Shown here piece by piece: positions 34,088 through 48,786 of a stretch of 64,000 bases of DNA. The notes beneath the pieces were generated by a model that had not been told where the DNA came from, did not search any database, and saw nothing but the letters and a program-made list of their open reading frames with translations. The translations under genes and the position numbers were made by a program. Numbering within the stretch: the stretch's first letter is position 1; each line of letters opens with the position of its first letter. Source of the stretch: Bugula neritina (Eukaryota; Animalia; Bryozoa); contig OZ037773.1 in the NCBI GenBank assembly GCA_964035545.1, positions 10,383,751 through 10,447,750 on the forward strand, in the 5' to 3' direction.

Positions 34088-37000
34088 TTATAATGGAGTA
34101 GAGCTCTGTGTACCAGATGCCGCCTGCAGGTCTTCAAGCATCTCTCTGGTTTTTACAACCTGGAGATGATCACTGTCATAAATAGCCTGAAACATTTGTA
34201 GAGCTGATGTTAAATTATCTTTTGCTTCTCCGTGTTTGTTGATCACCTTGTATGTGATACCAATGTTTCTGTACACCAGCGCTATGTTCGGATGGTTAGC
34301 ATCGTTACCATATACAGCCTTCATCATTTCCAAAGATTGTTGAAAATATTTCAAAGCCTGATCTTGCTTTCCTTGTTTAAAAAAAATACTTCCAATGTTT
34401 GCGTAGCTGGTTGCAATGTTGTCATGATTGGGTTGCATCTTGTAAACTACTTTCAGTATACCTAAGCATTTTATGTGTGAATTTAAAGCTTTTTTGTAGT
34501 TTCTCTGGCTTTCATACATATCCGCTAGCTTTTGATGAATAGCCGCAATGTCAGAATGGTTGGTGTCTAACCCATGTAGCTTCTTTTGCATTTCCAGTGC
34601 CAAATTGAGGTACTCTATAGCTTTTTCCTGTTCTTTCGAAACATTGTGAATGTCGGCCAAGGATCCATAACAGTTTGCAATGTCACAGTGGTTGGCATTT
34701 TCACCGTATGTACGTTTGAAAATCTTTAGTGCTTTTTCATACTCCTTTATTACAGAAGGGAAATTGCCCTTTGTACAATAGAGCTCAGCAATTACCTGAT
34801 GTGACCTTCCAATGTCCACATGATTCGTATGTTTGCCATGAACACGTTCAATCATGTTGTGTGACAATGTGCAATACTTTTCAGCATCCTTGGTCCTGCC
34901 CATGTCGCTGCACGCTCGTGTCATATCTCGGTAGCATATCGCAATGTCCCTGTGATCAGCATTCTCTCCATGCAGTTCCTTTAGAATCCTCAGACAATTT
35001 TCATAATGTTCCAGTGCTTTGTTAAAATTTGCAAGTAGTTGGTGCACATTTCCAATATTAGTTTGATTTGTAGCCAATTGAGGGCAATTTTTGTCTTCAA
35101 GTTTGTTCAGTATTTCAAATTCTTTGCTGTAGCTTTCCAAAGCATCATCAAATTTTCTTATTGCACACTCCAAGTCCCCAATTTGCCTGTAGGTTTCACC
35201 AGTATCTTTATGATCTGGAAAGTTCTGCAACAAACCTAAAGAGTATTCGTAGTACTCTAAAGCACATTCATAATTGCCATTAATTTTGTGTGCCTCACCA
35301 CAATCTCTATGTGCAGCTGCAAGTTGTAAATTATGACTACCTTCTCGGTAAATTTCCTTAAATGTAGTCAATGATCGGTTGCAGTGTTTTAGAGCTTCAA
35401 TGCTGTCTCCCAATTTTATGTAAGCCTTGCCGACATTGTTGTGGGCAGTCGCTATTTCAAGATTGTTAGCATCATCTCCAAAACATGTTTTTAGAGCTTC
35501 CAAGGCAATCATACTATTTTCTAAAGATTTTTGATACTCAGCTCTTTTGAAGTAAAATACTCCAAAGTGAGAGTAGACACTCGCACTATCAACATTGCAA
35601 TTAGAGTTTTTATAGAAATGGTTCAGCATGTCTAATGATTTGTTCAAATGCTCTAACACCTGCTCGTCAGATCCATCTTCCATAAGTGTGTAACTAATTT
35701 TTAAGTGAATAAGAGCAAGATCTCGATGACCAGTTTTTTTTTTGTAAATAGGCTTCAATATTTTAAGACAAGATTTGAAGCATTGCCGCGCAGCTTTAAA
35801 CTCTTTCTGCTTTAAATAGGCTATTCCTATTTTTTCAGATATTGTTGCTGTTTGCCTATTTCCATATTTTCCAAAAATTTGTTCCATAATTTGCAGTGCT
35901 TTCTCGTAATATCGAACTGCTTCTGAAAAGTTTCCGTTTTCCAGATGAACATCTCCTACCGAGCTGTAGCCTATAGCTACAGTAGGCTGCAGAGAAGTAT
36001 TTTCACCTGCAGCAAATCTAAGCAAATTTAATTCGTCAACCTCAATTTCAAATTTTTCAGGCAGCTTTCCAACAGCTTCTGAACTAATAGACTTGATAAT
36101 ATCTCGTGTATCATCATAACTAAATTCTAATATTTGTAGTGATTCAACGATTAATTGAAATGCCAGTGTAAAATTTCCTACTTCTGAATATACTTGTGCT
36201 GCTGATCGTAAAATTTCAGCCAAAAGAAGCAAAACTTTGTGGGGTGTGTCAGTTTTTTCTAATAGAAGGTATGCATCATCAAAATACTTCAGAGCTTTGT
36301 CCCATTGCTTTAGCTTCTGATAGACTCTGCCTAGAAGGTGAAGGCTATGAGCTAGTCGTGGGTCAGCGGAGGATTTTCTGAGAGCAATACTTCGAATAAT
36401 TTTGGCTTTTGCCAAGACTTGCAGACTTTTATCAAACTGTTCTTTGTGTAAATATATGAGTCCTTCTTCTTCTAGACTCTGAGCAAACTCTAGACTTGAA
36501 TGTGTTTCACCATTATACAGCTTCTTTAGGATATCTTGCGAGAGCTTGCAGTATTTCAAAGACTCTTCATAGTTCCACAGATTGCATAGAATTTTAGCCA
36601 TGTTTCTATAGCACCTGGATAAGTCAAGGCTACTTGAGCTCTCACCATATCGATGTCGCAGCTTTTGAAGACATACTTGTTGATGCTGTAATGCTTCTTC
36701 AAAGTTTTCTTGCTCAAGTTGCACAGCAGCCATTGTTTCACAATAAAAAACTTCTATGTCATAATTATCTTCTATTGACAAATGCATTGGTTCAATCAAT
36801 TTCAATGAACACCTGACGAATGCTTCGGACTGATCAAAAAACTTTAGGTGGCGGCAAGTAGTGGCTAATGCTTTGTACGCGTGTGAAGCAGTTTCTAGCA
36901 TTTGTTTACCAGCATCATCGGTTGGTGACATGCTTTTGAAAAATTTATCTAAATTGTTGTTCAAAGGAAAACTTGTTTTACCACTTATTTTATGACTTAG

Positions 37001-39478
37001 TATTTTAAAGACTTCTTCGAGCACCTGTAGAGATTGCCTGTAGCAAAATATTGTATTCAAACTGTCTGCAGATAGAATCTTCCACTTGAGACTTTCTTCA
37101 ACTGTTGCACTATTTTTATCCAACCATTCCAAGTAATTGAGAGCTGTTTCATGCAATCCATTTGACAGCAGCAAATAGCAACAGATCTCTGCACATTTCT
37201 TATCATGTGCAGAATTGGCAAGCAGCGGAGCTTGCGCGTTTTTGGCCGTTAAAAGTGATGTACATCCATTCTCTAAAACACCTGACCCCAATGCGTTTCT
37301 AATTCTCTTTAGGGCGGAAAAATGATCACCAGTAAAGAATATTACTTCCGTTTTTATCCAAATATTATTAACACTTTCATTTCGAATATATCCGATTGAT
37401 TCTTGCAGATGGATTGCTAAATTGCGGCTAAGAAAAAATGTTAATTTGTAGCCAAGTTTTCTTGCATTTAAGGCTCTTCTTGCAAAATTTTGAATCAAAT
37501 TTTTCATTGGGACAAGAATGCAGCCAAGAGCAATAAACAAGTTTGGAGGTATGTGATATCGATCAGTGCTTTTGGAATTGAAACATTTGTACAGTGATAC
37601 AAGATCGTACTTCGAGTTTGAGTGCAGATAAGTGCAGAGCCGAGTGTATATTGACAAAGCTAGCAGAAAGTGAATAAGGGAACAGTTCCTCATCGACAGC
37701 AAACCAATTTTAACCAAGTCCTCATACTTTTCCCAGGGATATTTAGATGATAGATTAAATAAATGACCAATATCTGTAGCTATAATTGTTGGGAATCGAA
37801 AAATATCTGTTTTGACTTTAATATCAAAGTTTTCGGGTGGTCCAAAAGTTGTGAACGTTGGCTTAAAACTGTATTTCTCCATATCACTAAAAAGAGTATA
37901 CAGTCGCTTCTCAATAATTCGCGAGCAATTAATGCCGTTTTCAACTTCAAACTCAAGTTGAGCTGTTTGAAATTTGTTTAGTAGGTGATTACCACCTGGG
38001 CTGGCATATATCTCAATGGTTGAGAAGAGCAAGTCGGACACGTCGCCCACTTGCTCTGCAGGGTCTGCCATGGCTTCCTTCTTGTAAAGCTCCATCAACT
38101 CATCTACTGTTAAGATATAGCTTTTACCTCCAGGCTTACCAGTAGGAATATTTCCAGCCGGCTCACTTATTCCATCAAATCTAAAGCCCACTCTTATGCT
38201 CCTCAGCAAGGATTGCATTTCTTTAGAATCTAGTTCTGGTTCCTGTATGTCATATGATTTGAGAGGGGTCTCTCCGCAGTTCCCTAGTCTGAAGTACGTG
38301 TCCATGGCAAGATCTTTAAAGTACTGGAGCTCCTCATCTGATTCAACAATAAAAATATATTCTAAATCAGAATAGGGAGTTGCCTCACCTCTAGCGATTG
38401 AGCCTAGCCCAACGACTGCAAAAGAACAAGGCGGCTCTCTCCCTTGTCTCTTTAAAATGCTGATACTAGAGGTGATGATTTTATTAGCAATAATCACAAG
38501 ATTATCACTGCTAACTTTAGTTAGCTCAAAAACTTTTTTCGTAAACGTTGAAGAGATGTCATTTTCCTTGTTATCAAAGAAGTCATCAATGTTGACTTTT
38601 TGCTCCAATTCTTTCAAACTCTGCAACTCATTTACTGTCTCACTCCGAAACTTTCCTAGCAATTCTTTGTGGTCTTTGGTGAGCTGCTGAAACTCTTTAA
38701 ATGTTAATGGATGAGAATTTTTATACCAGCTTTTTTCTATGTCGTAAATCTTTTCTTCTTTGCCTAGTTCTACTTTATGTTGGCTAACTGTAAGGCTGGC
38801 ATTTGCTAGTCCATGAGCCTAAAGTATTTATAAAAACTATTCAGCATGCACCTAACATCTAACTAAAAGTTTGTAAACACTTAAGAGTAGCCATGTTTAA
38901 GATTATTGTCATTTAGTGCATTCATTGTCAAACTCTAACTTATATTTCACTAGTAGATTTCATGTTTCCACATTGGTAATATAATATTTCCAAGATGTGA
39001 TAAGACTTACTTTAAGATAAAGTGACCAGTCATTGCCAACTTTATCTGCCTTTGAGTGATATCTCTTTGTCAGCTGGTCTAGTAATAAAATTTGTTCCTC
39101 TTTTGTTTCTATTAACAATATAAAAGTAGATAATTTCCTATAGAAATCATTCTTCTATAACCTTTGTTACAATACCAAGTTTTAAATTTCATGCAATATA
39201 ACAAATATTCACATGGTGCATAAGATATTTGTATCAGTTGTACCAGAGTTTATTCTAATTATAATTGTTTTTAATTATCATAAATTTTAGCCTGACAGTT
39301 CTCCAAATATGTCGCATGCAGTCAGGTCTTGATATTTACAGTTGGTAGCCTACCTAACAACTACTACATACAGCAGAGGTTAGAGTGCTACATTATGGCA
39401 AGTATTCCATTAGATGCCTAACTTTCTTTAAAATTGTACTTTTGTTAATATATACTTACTTTCCACTCTACTATCCAT
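34088..39478 (-). CDS. Nucleotidyltransferase (GlnD/GlnE/DUF294-like, pol-beta superfamily) - TPR-repeat protein, ~1,615 aa
   Basis: Exons 39478-39460 (MDSRVE), 39108-39011 (..GNDWSLYLK) and a 4.7-kb exon 38818-34088 containing ORF 34088..38662. NTase signature FAVVGLGSIARGEATPYSDLEY (hGS-x10-DhE) with a downstream acidic RFDG strand, a helical segment (DIKVKTDIFRFP) and ~20 TPRs of ~42-44 aa (e.g. HPNIALVYRNIGITY, ALKYFQQSLEM). Confidence 0.88.
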
Positions 39479-41669: not shown

Positions 41670-43247
41670 TTATCGCTGCCTCCTTCTCTTAGCCTCGTGC
41701 TCATATCTAGCAGAAACTAGACACAAGACTGTAACCATTACTAAGGAAGTCAGGCTAAAGGTCGTGTGACATGAGTCAGCCATGTCCAGACAGCCGACAG
41801 CAAACCCTATGACCACACACCAACACGGGAAAAGAAGGTACAGAGATATAAGGTGCCGCATGCGCTCTTCTCTTGGCTGTCTACTGTGCTGTAACAGTGG
41901 CTGCCGTAGTGAGTCATCAGATGAGTCATTCTCTGACAGGTTATTGTTGATGCTGCCAGGAAGTTGAGCTGGCAGTGACACCAGAGAAGAAGCATCACGT
42001 CTGCTGCTGCCATGAGCATTAAATGGAAAGTGGCCGCCAGAGCTTGTATAGAATCCTACAAGAGATCAAACTCTGTATCTTTCTTATAGAGAGATTTCTA
42101 TTGTTTTAGTATGAAGTTAGCTATTTGCATGTAATTTACTCTGTCAAAATGACAATCATGCAACATATACAAATAATATTGAATTAGAAGTTTGAGAAAA
42201 CAGTTATGTGCTGCTGTTGAGAATGTTTTATCTCAGATCATTTTCTATTCATCTACAATTAGCATGAAAAATACTTTTAATACTACCTCACAGCAATATG
42301 CCTCTTTTTAAGAAATATTGTATTGAAATTTGAAGCTTTTCACTTGAATATATATATATAACTTGTTATAACAGCATATAACATATAAAAATTGCATCAA
42401 TTGCTATGTTGTTGTATTTTGATATAACAATTTTTTATATGATGCGTAAACAGATGTATTTTTTGTACTGTAATACACAATAAAACATTATATCACTTTG
42501 CACATCATATTAAGTTGCTGATAATATTAGTATATTAATCCTAAACAATTGTCTCTAATATATCGCAGTTTTATTATAAGTTACATTATGTACAATACTG
42601 TATTATACTATACTAAATCGTATTATATTATATCATATTGTGATATATTATGCCATAACCGCACTAATTGTAGCATTGCCAACGTTGTTAAAACTCAAGA
42701 CACTCCTAATAATTTACGCTATTATCACACAACAACATAAAGAAGGTTGGGCAACTCTAAAACATTTATTCAACGTCACTTAGGTTTGTACTTATATCTT
42801 AAAGCTCAACTCAAACAGGTTTTGCTCAAATTATAAACAACTTATTAAAGAAAAGATAGAAATTAAATAAATCCTCAACCAACCTCTATTTCCTTCCACA
42901 TCCTGACCTGGTACTAGAGTCTCCTGACTGAAGCCGGTAGGGAATCCGGGGACAAGATAGAAACTAGCCGAACTCTCAAACGAGTTGTGTAGCTGATCAT
43001 AGCTAGCACCAAATGGAACTTGGGTGCTAGCTGTATCAAGTTGTACTTGAGTACTAGCTGTACTGAGTGGTACTTGAGTACTAGTCACAGCTATGTTGTC
43101 GCTAGTGCTGGACTCTGTGTCACTGAAGGGAGACTGATCGCTGCTTGAACCATCGTCAGGAGGATCACCGCCAACCCGTGTGGAAGTTGAAGACTCCGTG
43201 TCTGTTGACTCAGGACTTGAGAATGTGGAATAGTTATGTGCGGCCAT
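41670..43247 (-). CDS. Orphan ~249-aa membrane protein: Ser/Thr-rich disordered N-terminus and two C-terminal TM helices
   Basis: ORFs 42831..43247 and 41670..41981 join through a phase-1 intron: exon 43247-42884 (AG|GTTGGT donor) and exon 42055-41670 (TTGTAG acceptor), open frame. Hydrophobic stretches LISLYLLFPCWCVVIGFAVGCL and FSLTSLVMVTVLCLVSA, then a basic tail KRRRQR. Confidence 0.65.
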
Positions 43248-44113
43248 TTTAACTGCAGTTCACTCTTACAGAATTCACAAGTAGAACAGTTAGTGTTGAG
43301 AGTTTCACACGACTGCCAGCTGATAGTGAGGCATTGTAATAGATGTCTCTTTTATCTCACGCAGACTTGGTATCAGCCAGAAATATATTGGTTACTAATT
43401 CTAGGAACCTTTTATCTAATGACATTGTGATACCCAAAGCTGATAAAGTGCTGTTGTATTACTAACACAGGTATAATAACTATTACTGTAATTTCAATAT
43501 TTTAGGATAAAAACTTAAGTAAGACGAAACTGATCATAAGCTGCTGTTGAGCCTATCCAAGCATTAGTGGAGGTAACTAGCACCTCTCATTATCATTTTT
43601 AGTGAAATGTCAAATTATTGAATGTGGATTTCGGTCAGCATTAGAATCTGCATAGTTACAGTAATTAGTAGTTCATACTTTAATAGCTGTACATGTTTAT
43701 TTGGTTTTAGTCATTATTGCCAATGTATTCTCATTCATTGCATGAAAGTTGACAATATTATAAAATTATTTTGGTTTGCTCTGTTGTCATCGCAATGCAG
43801 TTTTTTTCAGAGTTGTGTTCTTTTTAATTATGAGAATACTACAAGATCTCTAACATAGTAGAAGAACTGTCACTTGACTAGAATATGTAGCTAGCCCTCC
43901 CAGGTATGAAACAGCTACTGGAATATGCCAGATTTCACAATATATTTGAAATTTAGCACTTAGCAGAGCATTATAACAAAACTGGTTGAAATAAATTTAT
44001 TCGTCCTAAATATTTGCATCTTTCAATATTGTAATTTGTAAATTTTCACCGTGCTGTCATGTGACTATGACATCATCAGGCATCTGTGATGTCCCAAGCA
44101 CAAGTGTATGATG

Positions 44114-44452
44114 TCACTGGTTTCTGTGATAGTTGTTACAAGCACATCCGTGGCCATTGCAGTAGCCGAAGTCATAGCCTTTAGACCTGCAATGACTTCT
44201 ACAATTCTTTACATCCCCACAAGCCTTTGTCACCAATACGTCTGCAACAGTGAGATAAGAAAGGTGTTTGAATTATCATTCTGACTAAAATGTTGATATC
44301 ACAAATTACTATTCTGATAATGTTGTTTATTTATAGTTACAACTAAGAGACAATGATAATATAATTGACTTAGTATAGATTGTATTATACTTACTTTCCA
44401 GAAGAGATAGGATAACTCCAAATAGAACTGTCAGGAGGATAGTGAACCTCAT
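44114..44452 (-). CDS. Cysteine-stabilised alpha-beta (invertebrate-type) defensin precursor, 61 aa
   Basis: Exons 44452-44395 and 44241-44114 (phase-1 GT-AG intron) encode MRFTILLTVLFGVILSLLENVLVTKA-CGDVKNCRSHCRSKGYDFGYCNGHGCACNNYHRNQ*. Signal peptide plus C-x5-C-x3-C-x9-C-x4-C-x-C spacing with GYC; minus-strand AATAAA at ~43996-44001. Confidence 0.88.
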
Positions 44453-46010
44453 CTTGGACTGGTTTACTGTTATGAGCTTGCTAAAGCAAAACAATAATAT
44501 ACAACAAATGCAAATTACAATACAAAACTCACATCATAAATTTGAGAATTATACTTACAACTAATAAAGTATTGAAAAGTAATTTATTATTACCTGCAGC
44601 TAATAGAGTATTGAGAGAAGTTTTACCTGCAGTTAGTAGATGATATTGGAAGATTAGGAATTATAAAACTTCTGACTTGCCTCTTTGAAAGATGCTAGCT
44701 GTTTAATGTACACCCTGAGCTTTGAGAGTGCATAAAATAGAGTTATGTAATAGTCTACCTTTCTATTGAAACTGAAATATATAATATTATAATTCAAGAT
44801 TGTTTGGAAATAATGAATAGTTTAGTATAAGTATAGCACAGTGCAGCAATCATAAAAGTTTATTCCAACTGTGATTATAATAACTATAATAAAGTTAGCT
44901 GAGTTTAGAGATTGTTTGAGTGCATGTCTGTGTTAACAGGTGGCTACTATAGTAACACTAGCTGTATAATTTCAATGTCTCTAATACTACAGTCATCTAG
45001 ACTACTATAACAATCACCAGGCACTATTTATTCTTAGATAAACATTTTATTCCCTGACAAAAAAGACGGCACCCTTCCTGATATTTTTAATTTGTTGTTA
45101 TTCTTCAAAATATTGTTTTTAGAAGCACAAATAATGAGCCCTTTGGTTCCACCTGCAAGCACCTGCCAAGGTAGCACCATGCAGACAAGTGTCAGTTTTA
45201 TAATATGACATGACACTCAGAGTTGGCAGCCTCTCAAGTCAGCCCCTACTTTCAAATAGTGGCAGTTGAATCATTAGCTGACGTTTGGTGAGATGGACTG
45301 AGTTGTAGATAAATAAATACAGATATATTGGATGAGATGTCAAGTAATTAGGGGAGATGTAGAAAGTCAGCTTCCTGTTGGAGTCTATCTATACAGAGTG
45401 TTAGAGGTAAGTAGTGTATGGGTAGGTAGATTTATACTGTTGGCTATATGATGATATACTATGTATTGTATATGTAATAATATATAAGTAGATTTATATA
45501 CTGTTATATAATGTTGCTATTGTGAAGGACTACATAATATATTATATAATGTAGTAATGTATTATAAACACTAACTGTTATAACGTGAGCTACACAAAAG
45601 CCATATAGCATGAACTAAGGTTGTAAAATACGTATTATAATATTGTTAAAATATATTCTAAATAAATTTATTAGAAACAAATTATTTTCTGCTTTATCCT
45701 CCAAGTAATACATATAGCTTTTAAGGCAGGACAATTTTTATTACTGAACTGTAAAAGCTAAATATAACTGGTTACATTTTGTACATATTAACTGCCAAAT
45801 TCTAAGCAATTGGTCCTTCAGTTATCAGTGAAGCTGTGGATTAAACTGATAACACATTTCATGTTTTCTTTGCTTGAGCAGTTATGAGCAGAGAGAATAT
45901 TGACACAGGGTTCATATCACTGAGAAAGCTGATCTTTTGCTTTTTCATACAGAATAAAAATTTAAGTCAAGAGCAGTTACTTTTTGGGAAACTAAAGTAA
46001 CAAATGAGCT

Positions 46011-46148
46011 TGCAGGTGCTCATAGGTGCTTACAGGTGCTCACAGGTGCTTGCAGGTGCTTGCAGGTGCTCGCAGGTGCTTGCAGGTGCTTGCAGGTGCT
46101 CGCAGGTACTTGCAGGTGCTTGCAGGTGCTCGCAGGTGCTCGCAGGTG
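46011..46148. repeat. 10-bp minisatellite (TGCAGGTGCT)n
   Basis: Seen directly. Confidence 0.9.
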
Positions 46149-46257
46149 TTTGAATTAAACAACTCAAAGTCTAGAAAGCCAAAGTAAGCTAAGGTAAGCA
46201 GATACATTACTCAATACTACACTATGTATATGTTTGTTACCAGGGTTACCAGGTAAG

Positions 46258-48786
46258 ATGGACTATATAACTTACGGCAGCGAGGAGAACGGCAACCAGT
46301 CCAGAGGTGTAATTGTTTATGAGGACAAGTCCAACATGAGTAAAGCAGCCGGGCGCATGGAGTACATGAGTAAGCACAGATCACCTTTACTTCCTGTACA
46401 GGAGAAACTAGCTAAGGTGAGGCAACTCTAACTGCAGCTAGGACGGCTGCTGTGAGTGTTATTATATGTTGTCTGATTAGCAGTAAAAACTACAGTGTGA
46501 AGATACTTTAGCTAAATCCATATGAATTCTACAGAGAAACTTAATTTGTGGTAGGAGTAATCATCTCATGATGCAGATTTATTATGTTTTTATTAAAACT
46601 AATCAACAAAGTGTTGTTTGGTTGGTTGCTAGGTGACAGAAGAGCATAGTAGGGGTGTGATGTTGAGTGCTCCAGACAGTACGATGATCCTCACCAACAT
46701 GCTCAAGTTCAGCGGGGCTAAGAAGTGTATCGACGTGGGTAAGACAAACCTTGCTCATGTCACAGAGTATATGTATTACCACATGCACACACCTGCACAC
46801 ACCTGCATACACCTGCGCACACCTGAATACACCTGAACACACTTGCACACACCGGGCCTTCGCACACTTGAAATGAGACTTTATATAAGCGGTGTGAAAT
46901 TTGAATATTCCTAATTTCAAGTTAAATTGCAAGTTTTCATTACACGGAACTTCTTGAAATTTCACTGGAATAAAAGATAATTACTTTTTTAAATTACTAC
47001 ATTACTTGAGCAGCTGTGACAAATTGCTTGCTCTTGTAAAGTTAAATAGAAAACTAACTTTATGTTCTACTGATCACTACTACTAAATGTAAAGCTTGTG
47101 TTATCTGTTAAGTTCCAGGTAATCCCTAGTAGCCTACTGATATTTTATAATATTATACTAACAGACACTGATAGTACTAATATCCTATATAATATGAGAG
47201 AAATACCATATCTAGGATGATGTATTACCGCTGGTTTCCTGTTCCAGGGGTGTTCACGGGGTACAGCGCCCTCTCCTGGGCTCTGAGCATACCCGAGGAC
47301 GGGAAGGTTGTTGCACTCGATGTGTCCGAGGAAGACGCATCTATCGGGAAGCCATTTTGGAAAGAGGCGGGTGTTGAACATAAGATAGATCTGAGAATAG
47401 CTCCGGCTAACAAATCCCTTCGTAAGTTTCTGCGTATTCCAATTTGCACTTCTTTATTTTATTCTCTTGGAGTTATGCTCTCTCACTATATTTACTCTCA
47501 CTCTGTTGGAGTTATACTCCCTTACTACCTATGTTACTTTGTACACACAATGCAACAAAACTCTTATAAAAGGCTATTGAGAAATAAAGCAAGATTGTTA
47601 AATCTGAAAAGCTGATGCAATATCACTAGAAGTTGTCCTCTTTTGTCTTACAGAAGAGATGCTAGACTCGGGAGAGGGTGGGTCCTATGACTTCATGTAT
47701 ATTGATGCTGACAAGGAAGGCTATGATACGTACTATGAACTCGGACTAAAACTCTTACGAGCAGGCGGAATCATTGCAATTGACAATGTAAGCTAAGCAG
47801 TGTAACTATCTAAAGTATCACAACTGTAATGTGTCACACTGTATTGTAATGTGTCACACTGTATGTAATGTGTCACACTGTATTGTAATGTGTCACACTG
47901 TATTGTAATACGTCGCACTGTAGGTAATGTGTCACACTGAATTGTAATGTGTCACACTGTATGTAATGTGTCACACTGTATGTAATGTGTCACACTGTAC
48001 TGTAATGTGTCACACTGTATGTAATGTGTCACACTGTATGTAATGTGTCACACTGTATGTAATGTGTCACACTGTATGTAATGTGTCACACTGTATGTAA
48101 TGTGTCACACTGTATTGTAATGTGACACACTGTATTGTAAGACGTCGCAATAACTCCAATGTGTCACATGATCATGTCTGATTGATAAACTAAAAACTAA
48201 ATAGTTTGCATTTATTATTATATGCAGGAAAAGCTATTTATGTTTCGGAATAATATAATTTACTATCACCATAAAATGAGTCATATATAACAGGATGTAG
48301 ACTTGTTGGAAGAAACCTATTAGCTATGTTTGCAGTAGTTTACAATACTTTTAGTTTTATAAACTCTATAATTTGCTCTAATTTGTCACAAAAATTAAAC
48401 TGGGTGAAATGAATTTTAATTTGTATCACGGTCATGGTAAGTTTGCTCTTCAAAAAGATAAACTCGAAATTTAGATTACAGGAGAACTTGAACTTTATTA
48501 GGTATGAATACTGAGGGTTAACTGTTTATACTAAATGAAACTGAAAATGGTGAACTAACATAGAATGACTCCCTGGCAAGGCCCAAACATGCAGGATTCA
48601 CATTTTTACTAATTAAAACAATTTAATTTGCAGACCTGGTTTTTCGGCACCTTAGTGGATACAAGTATTAAAGATGCAGGGGTACAAGTACTTCGTGCAC
48701 TGAACGAGAAAATTAGAGAAGATGTGAGAGTAACAGCTGTCATGGTGAATGCAGGAGATGGCATTTTTCTGTGTCTTAAAAACTGA
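46258..48786 (+). CDS. SAM-dependent O-methyltransferase, COMTD1/caffeoyl-CoA OMT-like (Methyltransf_3)
   Basis: Exons 46258-46416, 46633-46738, 47248-47421, 47654-47787, 48634-48786. Motifs AKKCIDVGVFTGYSAL, WKEAGVEHKIDLRIAPA, SYDFMYIDADKEGYDTYYE..LLRAGGIIAIDN, GDGIFLC. Confidence 0.93.
47824..48128. repeat. 19-20-bp intronic minisatellite (TGTAATGTGTCACACTGTA)n
   Basis: About 15 copies. Confidence 0.9.

Follow-up and report, generated by a model that had tools for sequence, protein, structure and literature searches.

A two-coding-exon gene of the bryozoan Bugula neritina for a predicted secreted, compact CS-alpha-beta peptide of the defensin type

The CS-alpha-beta peptides comprise both defensins and scorpion toxins, and a published criterion separates the two. 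Channel toxicity is associated with a short n-loop together with the motif K-C4-x-N, whereas defensin cores resemble G-Y-C-A-G (PMC5116183, PMC5004176). A survey of this superfamily from 2016 did not mention Bryozoa (PMC5116183), and in the literature searched we found no description of host-encoded defensins from this phylum. Here, we analyzed a gene of this kind in Bugula neritina. The whole gene is located on the minus strand of chromosome 9 (OZ037773.1) at 10,427,864-10,428,202, within a stretch of 64,000 nucleotides (positions 10,383,751 to 10,447,750; hereafter, the window). Its features are given below in window coordinates, each with the evidence in parentheses.

44395-44452, minus strand: coding exon 1, running from the ATG through 19 codons of hydrophobic signal peptide to the first base of a split codon (sequence and translation)
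44242-44394, minus strand: phase-1 intron of 153 nt, GTAAGT...TTGCAG (sequence reading)
44114-44241, minus strand: coding exon 2, which completes the leader and encodes the six-Cys domain and a tail of 7 residues, with the stop codon at 44116-44114 (translation)
44117-44221, minus strand: predicted mature 35-residue CS-alpha-beta domain, C-x5-C-x3-C-x9-C-x4-C-x-C (translation, AlphaFold and structure searches)
44453-44480, minus strand: 5' untranslated stretch following an acceptor-like AG at 44482-44481 (matches residues 13-22 of KAF6033208.1)
44627-44664, minus strand: possible upstream leader exon, corresponding to the CDS start of an 83-aa database model (alignment with draft contigs)
44551-44640, minus strand: a 33-39-nt unit present in three imperfect copies, with a donor-like motif in every copy (repeat search and alignment)
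43996-44001, minus strand: AATAAA hexamer located 113 nt past the stop, a candidate poly(A) signal (sequence reading)

The initial annotation had described a minus-strand signal-peptide exon, a phase-1 intron and a six-Cys exon of 35 residues, and all three were found as described. The junction at 44395/44241 is in phase 1, with GTAAGT as the donor and TTGCAG as the acceptor. Exon 2 encodes 41 residues followed by TGA, six of which precede the 35-residue domain, and the signal peptide is probably cleaved after T-K-A, as predicted by the -3/-1 rule. A recount likewise agreed on a six-Cys peptide with CxxxC, GxC and CxC motifs, three His residues and a net charge of +3 (2 K + 3 R - 2 D), and the short n-loop, short C-terminal tail of seven residues and lack of an acidic propeptide were supported. 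The gene had also been said to be hidden from the list of open reading frames, in which exon 2 indeed appears solely as a 40-aa frame starting with TTG. On the other hand, the phase-1 intron had been taken as a hallmark of defensins, which is overstated; it does not identify a defensin, since phase-1 introns are common in genes for secreted proteins of all kinds, close to where the signal peptide is cleaved, and the gene structures of invertebrate defensins vary.

One match to the strict Cys pattern was found in the window, against 0 in 100 shuffled sequences. A Cys/Val-rich repetitive stretch at 46781-46866 on the minus strand fits a looser six-Cys pattern in two frames, and looks like a low-complexity repeat rather than a peptide gene. 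A search for the kappaB-like motif GGGRNNYYCC gave no site near the defensin gene. Elsewhere in the window, an uninterrupted frame of 1524 aa (34088-38662, minus strand) carries many TPR repeats of the NPHP3-like kind and an N-terminal nucleotidyltransferase-like stretch (DUF294).

We then compared the locus with public gene models. A six-member family profile run against 1.84 billion proteins gave 26 hits, among which was KAF6033208.1, an 83-aa model from the 2020 draft genome. This model and its twin, KAF6026472.1, cover the locus and are held in UniProt as A0A7J7K6I7 and A0A7J7JJF6, both named "Defensin". Thus, contrary to the initial annotation, the gene is not unannotated; a near-identical copy is already public under an automatic name. 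Both models join the leader to the six-Cys domain through the split codon, at the same junction as in the window. The draft contigs concerned, L030 and L031, are syntenic with the window, as they share an O-methyltransferase neighbour and align collinearly. The draft was annotated by AUGUSTUS with transcriptome hints (PMC7576161), so that its model is an independent prediction of the junction, short of proof of transcription.

At the nucleotide level, the window was 89.7% identical to L030 in exon 1, 93.5% in the intron, 92.8% in exon 2 and 55% in the 3' UTR, and the coding exons and intron differ by approximately 7-10% overall from the draft copy. When the two exons were counted separately, 11 synonymous and 4 non-synonymous changes were observed between the window and L030 (pS 0.275, pN 0.029, dN/dS 0.10, Fisher P 1.3e-5), 7 and 2 of which, respectively, fall in exon 2. 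The amino-acid substitutions relative to the draft copies thus concern 4 of the 60 compared codons, the split codon being left out. Within the mature domain, the sole difference is K/Q in the n-loop, and all Cys and Gly residues are kept; the second replacement in exon 2, K/E, lies in the residues just before Cys1. The alignment of L031 with the window showed further differences, which by eye read as synonymous, and its frame is undamaged. With a dN/dS of 0.10 and an undamaged frame in L031, the reading frame is under purifying selection.

These data bear on the alternative that the gene copy at this locus is silent or decaying and yields no product. No transcript-derived protein for the gene was present in a collection of 5.8 billion proteins, in which a word-index search with exon 2 found nothing (the 83-aa database model falls outside the length window of that search) and a search with KAF6033208.1 matched only itself. 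Moreover, the candidate poly(A) hexamer AATAAA reads AACAAA in the draft copies and is therefore not conserved. However, the splice sites are kept and the frame is intact in all three haplotypes (window, L030 and L031), and this, together with the excess of synonymous changes, makes a silent copy highly improbable. Chance can be excluded for the gene because the strict Cys pattern was absent from all shuffles, an independent model uses the same junction and the substitutions are mostly synonymous. The evidence supports a real gene with two coding exons for a secreted CS-alpha-beta peptide.

Over a wider region (window 41926-47309), collinearity extends for 5 kb and 12-20% of nucleotides differ between the Plymouth assembly and the Virginia type-S draft; just a few percent separate the two draft contigs. 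The divergence between window and draft is unusually deep for one nominal species, and would reflect either lineage structure or high polymorphism at an immune locus.

The database models carry 22 additional N-terminal residues, which derive from the upstream exon. The ATG used by the draft model reads ATA in the present assembly (44664-44662), and the 83-aa model for this reason probably reaches too far at its N-terminus; translation probably begins at the downstream ATG at 44452. A donor-like GT (44626-44625) lies next to the possible leader exon, and the gene may have three exons if that exon is spliced; it is probably non-coding and at most contributes a 5' leader. The 33-39-nt units upstream each carry a donor-like TGCAG/GTAA, and their copy number varies between haplotypes, with 66 nt more in L030 than in the window across this repeat region. 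TRF called no tandem repeat at these units, though the separate repeat search found the three imperfect copies. In all four paralogue types (see below), a pyrimidine-rich, acceptor-like AG was seen 8-30 nt ahead of the ATG. This arrangement suggests that an intron in the 5' UTR may be a family feature of the Bugula paralogues, and such an intron has been reported in some scorpion CS-alpha-beta genes (PMC5308243).

A search of the genome with a two-sequence profile gave 24 matches, of which 22 were intact loci of the family, the window gene being one of them. As the initial annotation had proposed a search for paralogues, it is of note that at least 21 other loci matched, which fall into three types; with the window gene, the family has four types and about 22-23 loci. 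In all four, the first coding exon stops one base before a GT donor and the acceptor restores a phase-1 junction. The closest paralogue, at C9:7.149 Mb, is 54% identical to the window peptide and has the same helix motif, and Ka/Ks against it is saturated at silent sites (pS 0.75). Two tRNA-like, SINE-looking inserts were seen within the phase-1 intron of this paralogue (L002:1620-1990), where ARAGORN predicted no tRNA. Another paralogue, at C2:31.40 Mb, has a long repeated pro-region. The third type consists of 19 nearly identical, very cationic six-Cys copies on both strands of C9:4431386-4568458 (4.43-4.57 Mb), which carry Lys before Cys4 (K-C-S-G) and are in this respect nearer the toxin signature than the window gene.

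Outside Bugula, relatives include a mite "Defensin", a clam two-domain defensin, spider TIL-defensin fusions and lepidopteran 6Tox/X-tox-like repeats. The profile hits P0009, P0011 and P0017, from Logan run assemblies, were considered as Bugula genes and rejected, their identity to the genome being 35-48%. The n-loop opens with G-C-P in all paralogues and all outside relatives, whereas the window peptide and its draft counterparts have A-C-G and one residue fewer. On the strength of this difference, the window peptide is a derived, more compact member of the family.

The six Cys residues (C...CxxxC...C...CxC) are invariant over 15 aligned relatives. AlphaFold models had a mean pLDDT of 68.6 with 6 aligned sequences and 72.4 with 15, and both place a helix at residues 10/13-20 and strands at 24-27 and 32-35. 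In a Foldseek search, none of the 136 matches was significant alone, and the best 50 of the 136 were all CS-alpha-beta peptides, with TM scores of 0.5-0.65. A structure search without Foldseek against 48,161 representative PDB chains placed CS-alpha-beta peptides in all of the top 11 positions (plant defensins, a scorpion venom peptide, nasonin-1M and scorpion toxins; Z 3.7-4.4, rmsd 1.7-2.4 A over 33-40 residues), and its best matches were defensins and scorpion toxins almost without exception. For a domain of 35 residues, this is about the maximum that such fold searches can give. With moderate confidence, the predicted fold is thus CS-alpha-beta, a helix packed on an antiparallel beta-sheet, and we infer disulfides C1-C4, C2-C5 and C3-C6.

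The sequence was next placed among known families. The initial annotation had suggested an HMM search against defensin families, and no Pfam defensin model reached its cut-off: Defensin_2 (PF01097) scored 15.8 bits (E 0.013) against 20.4, and Gamma-thionin (PF00304) scored 17.4 bits against 25.1. Weak sequence hits in the PDB were CS-alpha-beta peptides, either defensins or scorpion toxins, in 52 of 52 cases. The family profile matched micasin (E 1.6e-5) and the arthropod defensin 2ru0 (8e-4), and further matches were cobatoxin, MarkTX-7 and BmKDfsin3. Owing to these profile matches, the Bugula family is tentatively placed nearest the short-n-loop, "ancient invertebrate-type" defensins. In PDB alignments, the His ahead of Cys3 in the window peptide is also found in insect defensin A and related defensins.

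Scorpion toxins recur among these matches, and an alternative is that the peptide is a toxin-like pore blocker of K+ channels that serves in deterrence or signalling rather than as an antimicrobial. Its aligned stretches contain the same number of residues as those of kaliotoxin, agitoxin 2 and OSK1 (alpha-KTx 3); there is therefore no net gap, and the Cys spacing appears identical to that of kaliotoxin-type toxins. Structural matches to agitoxin 2 and OSK1 reached TM 0.64-0.65, the nearest ESM Atlas clusters were scorpion short toxins (0.86), and with a short n-loop the steric obstacle to binding a channel is removed (PMC5308243, PMC5116183). However, the Atlas value is under the lead threshold of 0.9, and Pfam Toxin_2 (PF00451) had no match at E<=10. 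The signature K-C4-x-N is also absent, as the gamma-core of the window peptide is G-Y-C-N-G, with Tyr before Cys4 and Gly at +2. Because its core has the form known from insect and scorpion defensins (PMC5116183) and not K-C-x-N, the peptide is defensin-like by the published toxin criterion. To our knowledge, no venom apparatus is known in bryozoans. Taken together, we regard a channel ligand as quite unlikely.

The explanation we prefer, and consider somewhat better than an even bet, is that the gene encodes a secreted host-defence (antibacterial) peptide that acts on microbial envelopes. According to this proposal, it would be a functional Bugula neritina gene and a compact, derived member of a lineage-expanded cis-defensin family. 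Once expressed, the leader would direct secretion and the three disulfides would lock the helix onto the beta-hairpin. The moderately cationic, His-bearing peptide would then act on the microbial envelope in the manner of related defensins from fungi and invertebrates. Several observations count against this reading, namely the net charge of only +3, the non-conserved poly(A) signal, the moderate confidence of the fold models, the sub-cut-off Defensin_2 score and the scorpion short toxins as look-alikes in the language model.

Antibacterial action is also weighed against co-option of the defensin fold for control of the bryostatin-producing symbiont or for another non-killing function. B. neritina hosts a vertically transmitted symbiont (PMC7576161), and charge is widely diversified in the family, from the cationic Bugula array to the acidic outside relative P0011. 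No sequence feature points specifically to such a role, and we consider co-option unlikely.

The Bugula gene is real and uncharacterised, yet ordinary within a known superfamily of peptides. Together with its roughly 20 paralogues, it extends the known range of cis-defensins to lophophorates, and the peptides of this family offer compact scaffolds on which antimicrobial and channel activity can be compared. A more speculative idea, which we think improbable, is that both loops were independently shortened within a bryozoan defensin family to the apparent Cys spacing of the kaliotoxin type. If this were true and the peptide bound ion channels, the transition from defensin to toxin would have a natural, non-venomous parallel here.

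Among the described systems, the toxins of the alpha-KTx 3 group differ from the window peptide in their pore-plugging Lys before Cys4 and in the Asn of K-C-x-N, neither of which it has. Classical insect defensins (PF01097) have a much longer n-loop than the Bugula peptide, and its Pfam score is under the cut-off. Alignment of the helix motif C-x-x-H-C and of the G-Y-C-N-G core with insect defensin A, lucifensin and sapecin gives 40-48% identity over 25 residues. Compared to micasin-type defensins, the n-loop of the window peptide has 5 residues instead of 6 and its C4-C5 loop has 4 instead of about 7, and the G-C-P start of the n-loop, which micasin, BmKDfsin3, 2ru0 and the paralogues keep, is missing. 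What these three defensins and the Bugula peptide have in common is the six-Cys CS-alpha-beta framework, the short n-loop and the His before Cys3.
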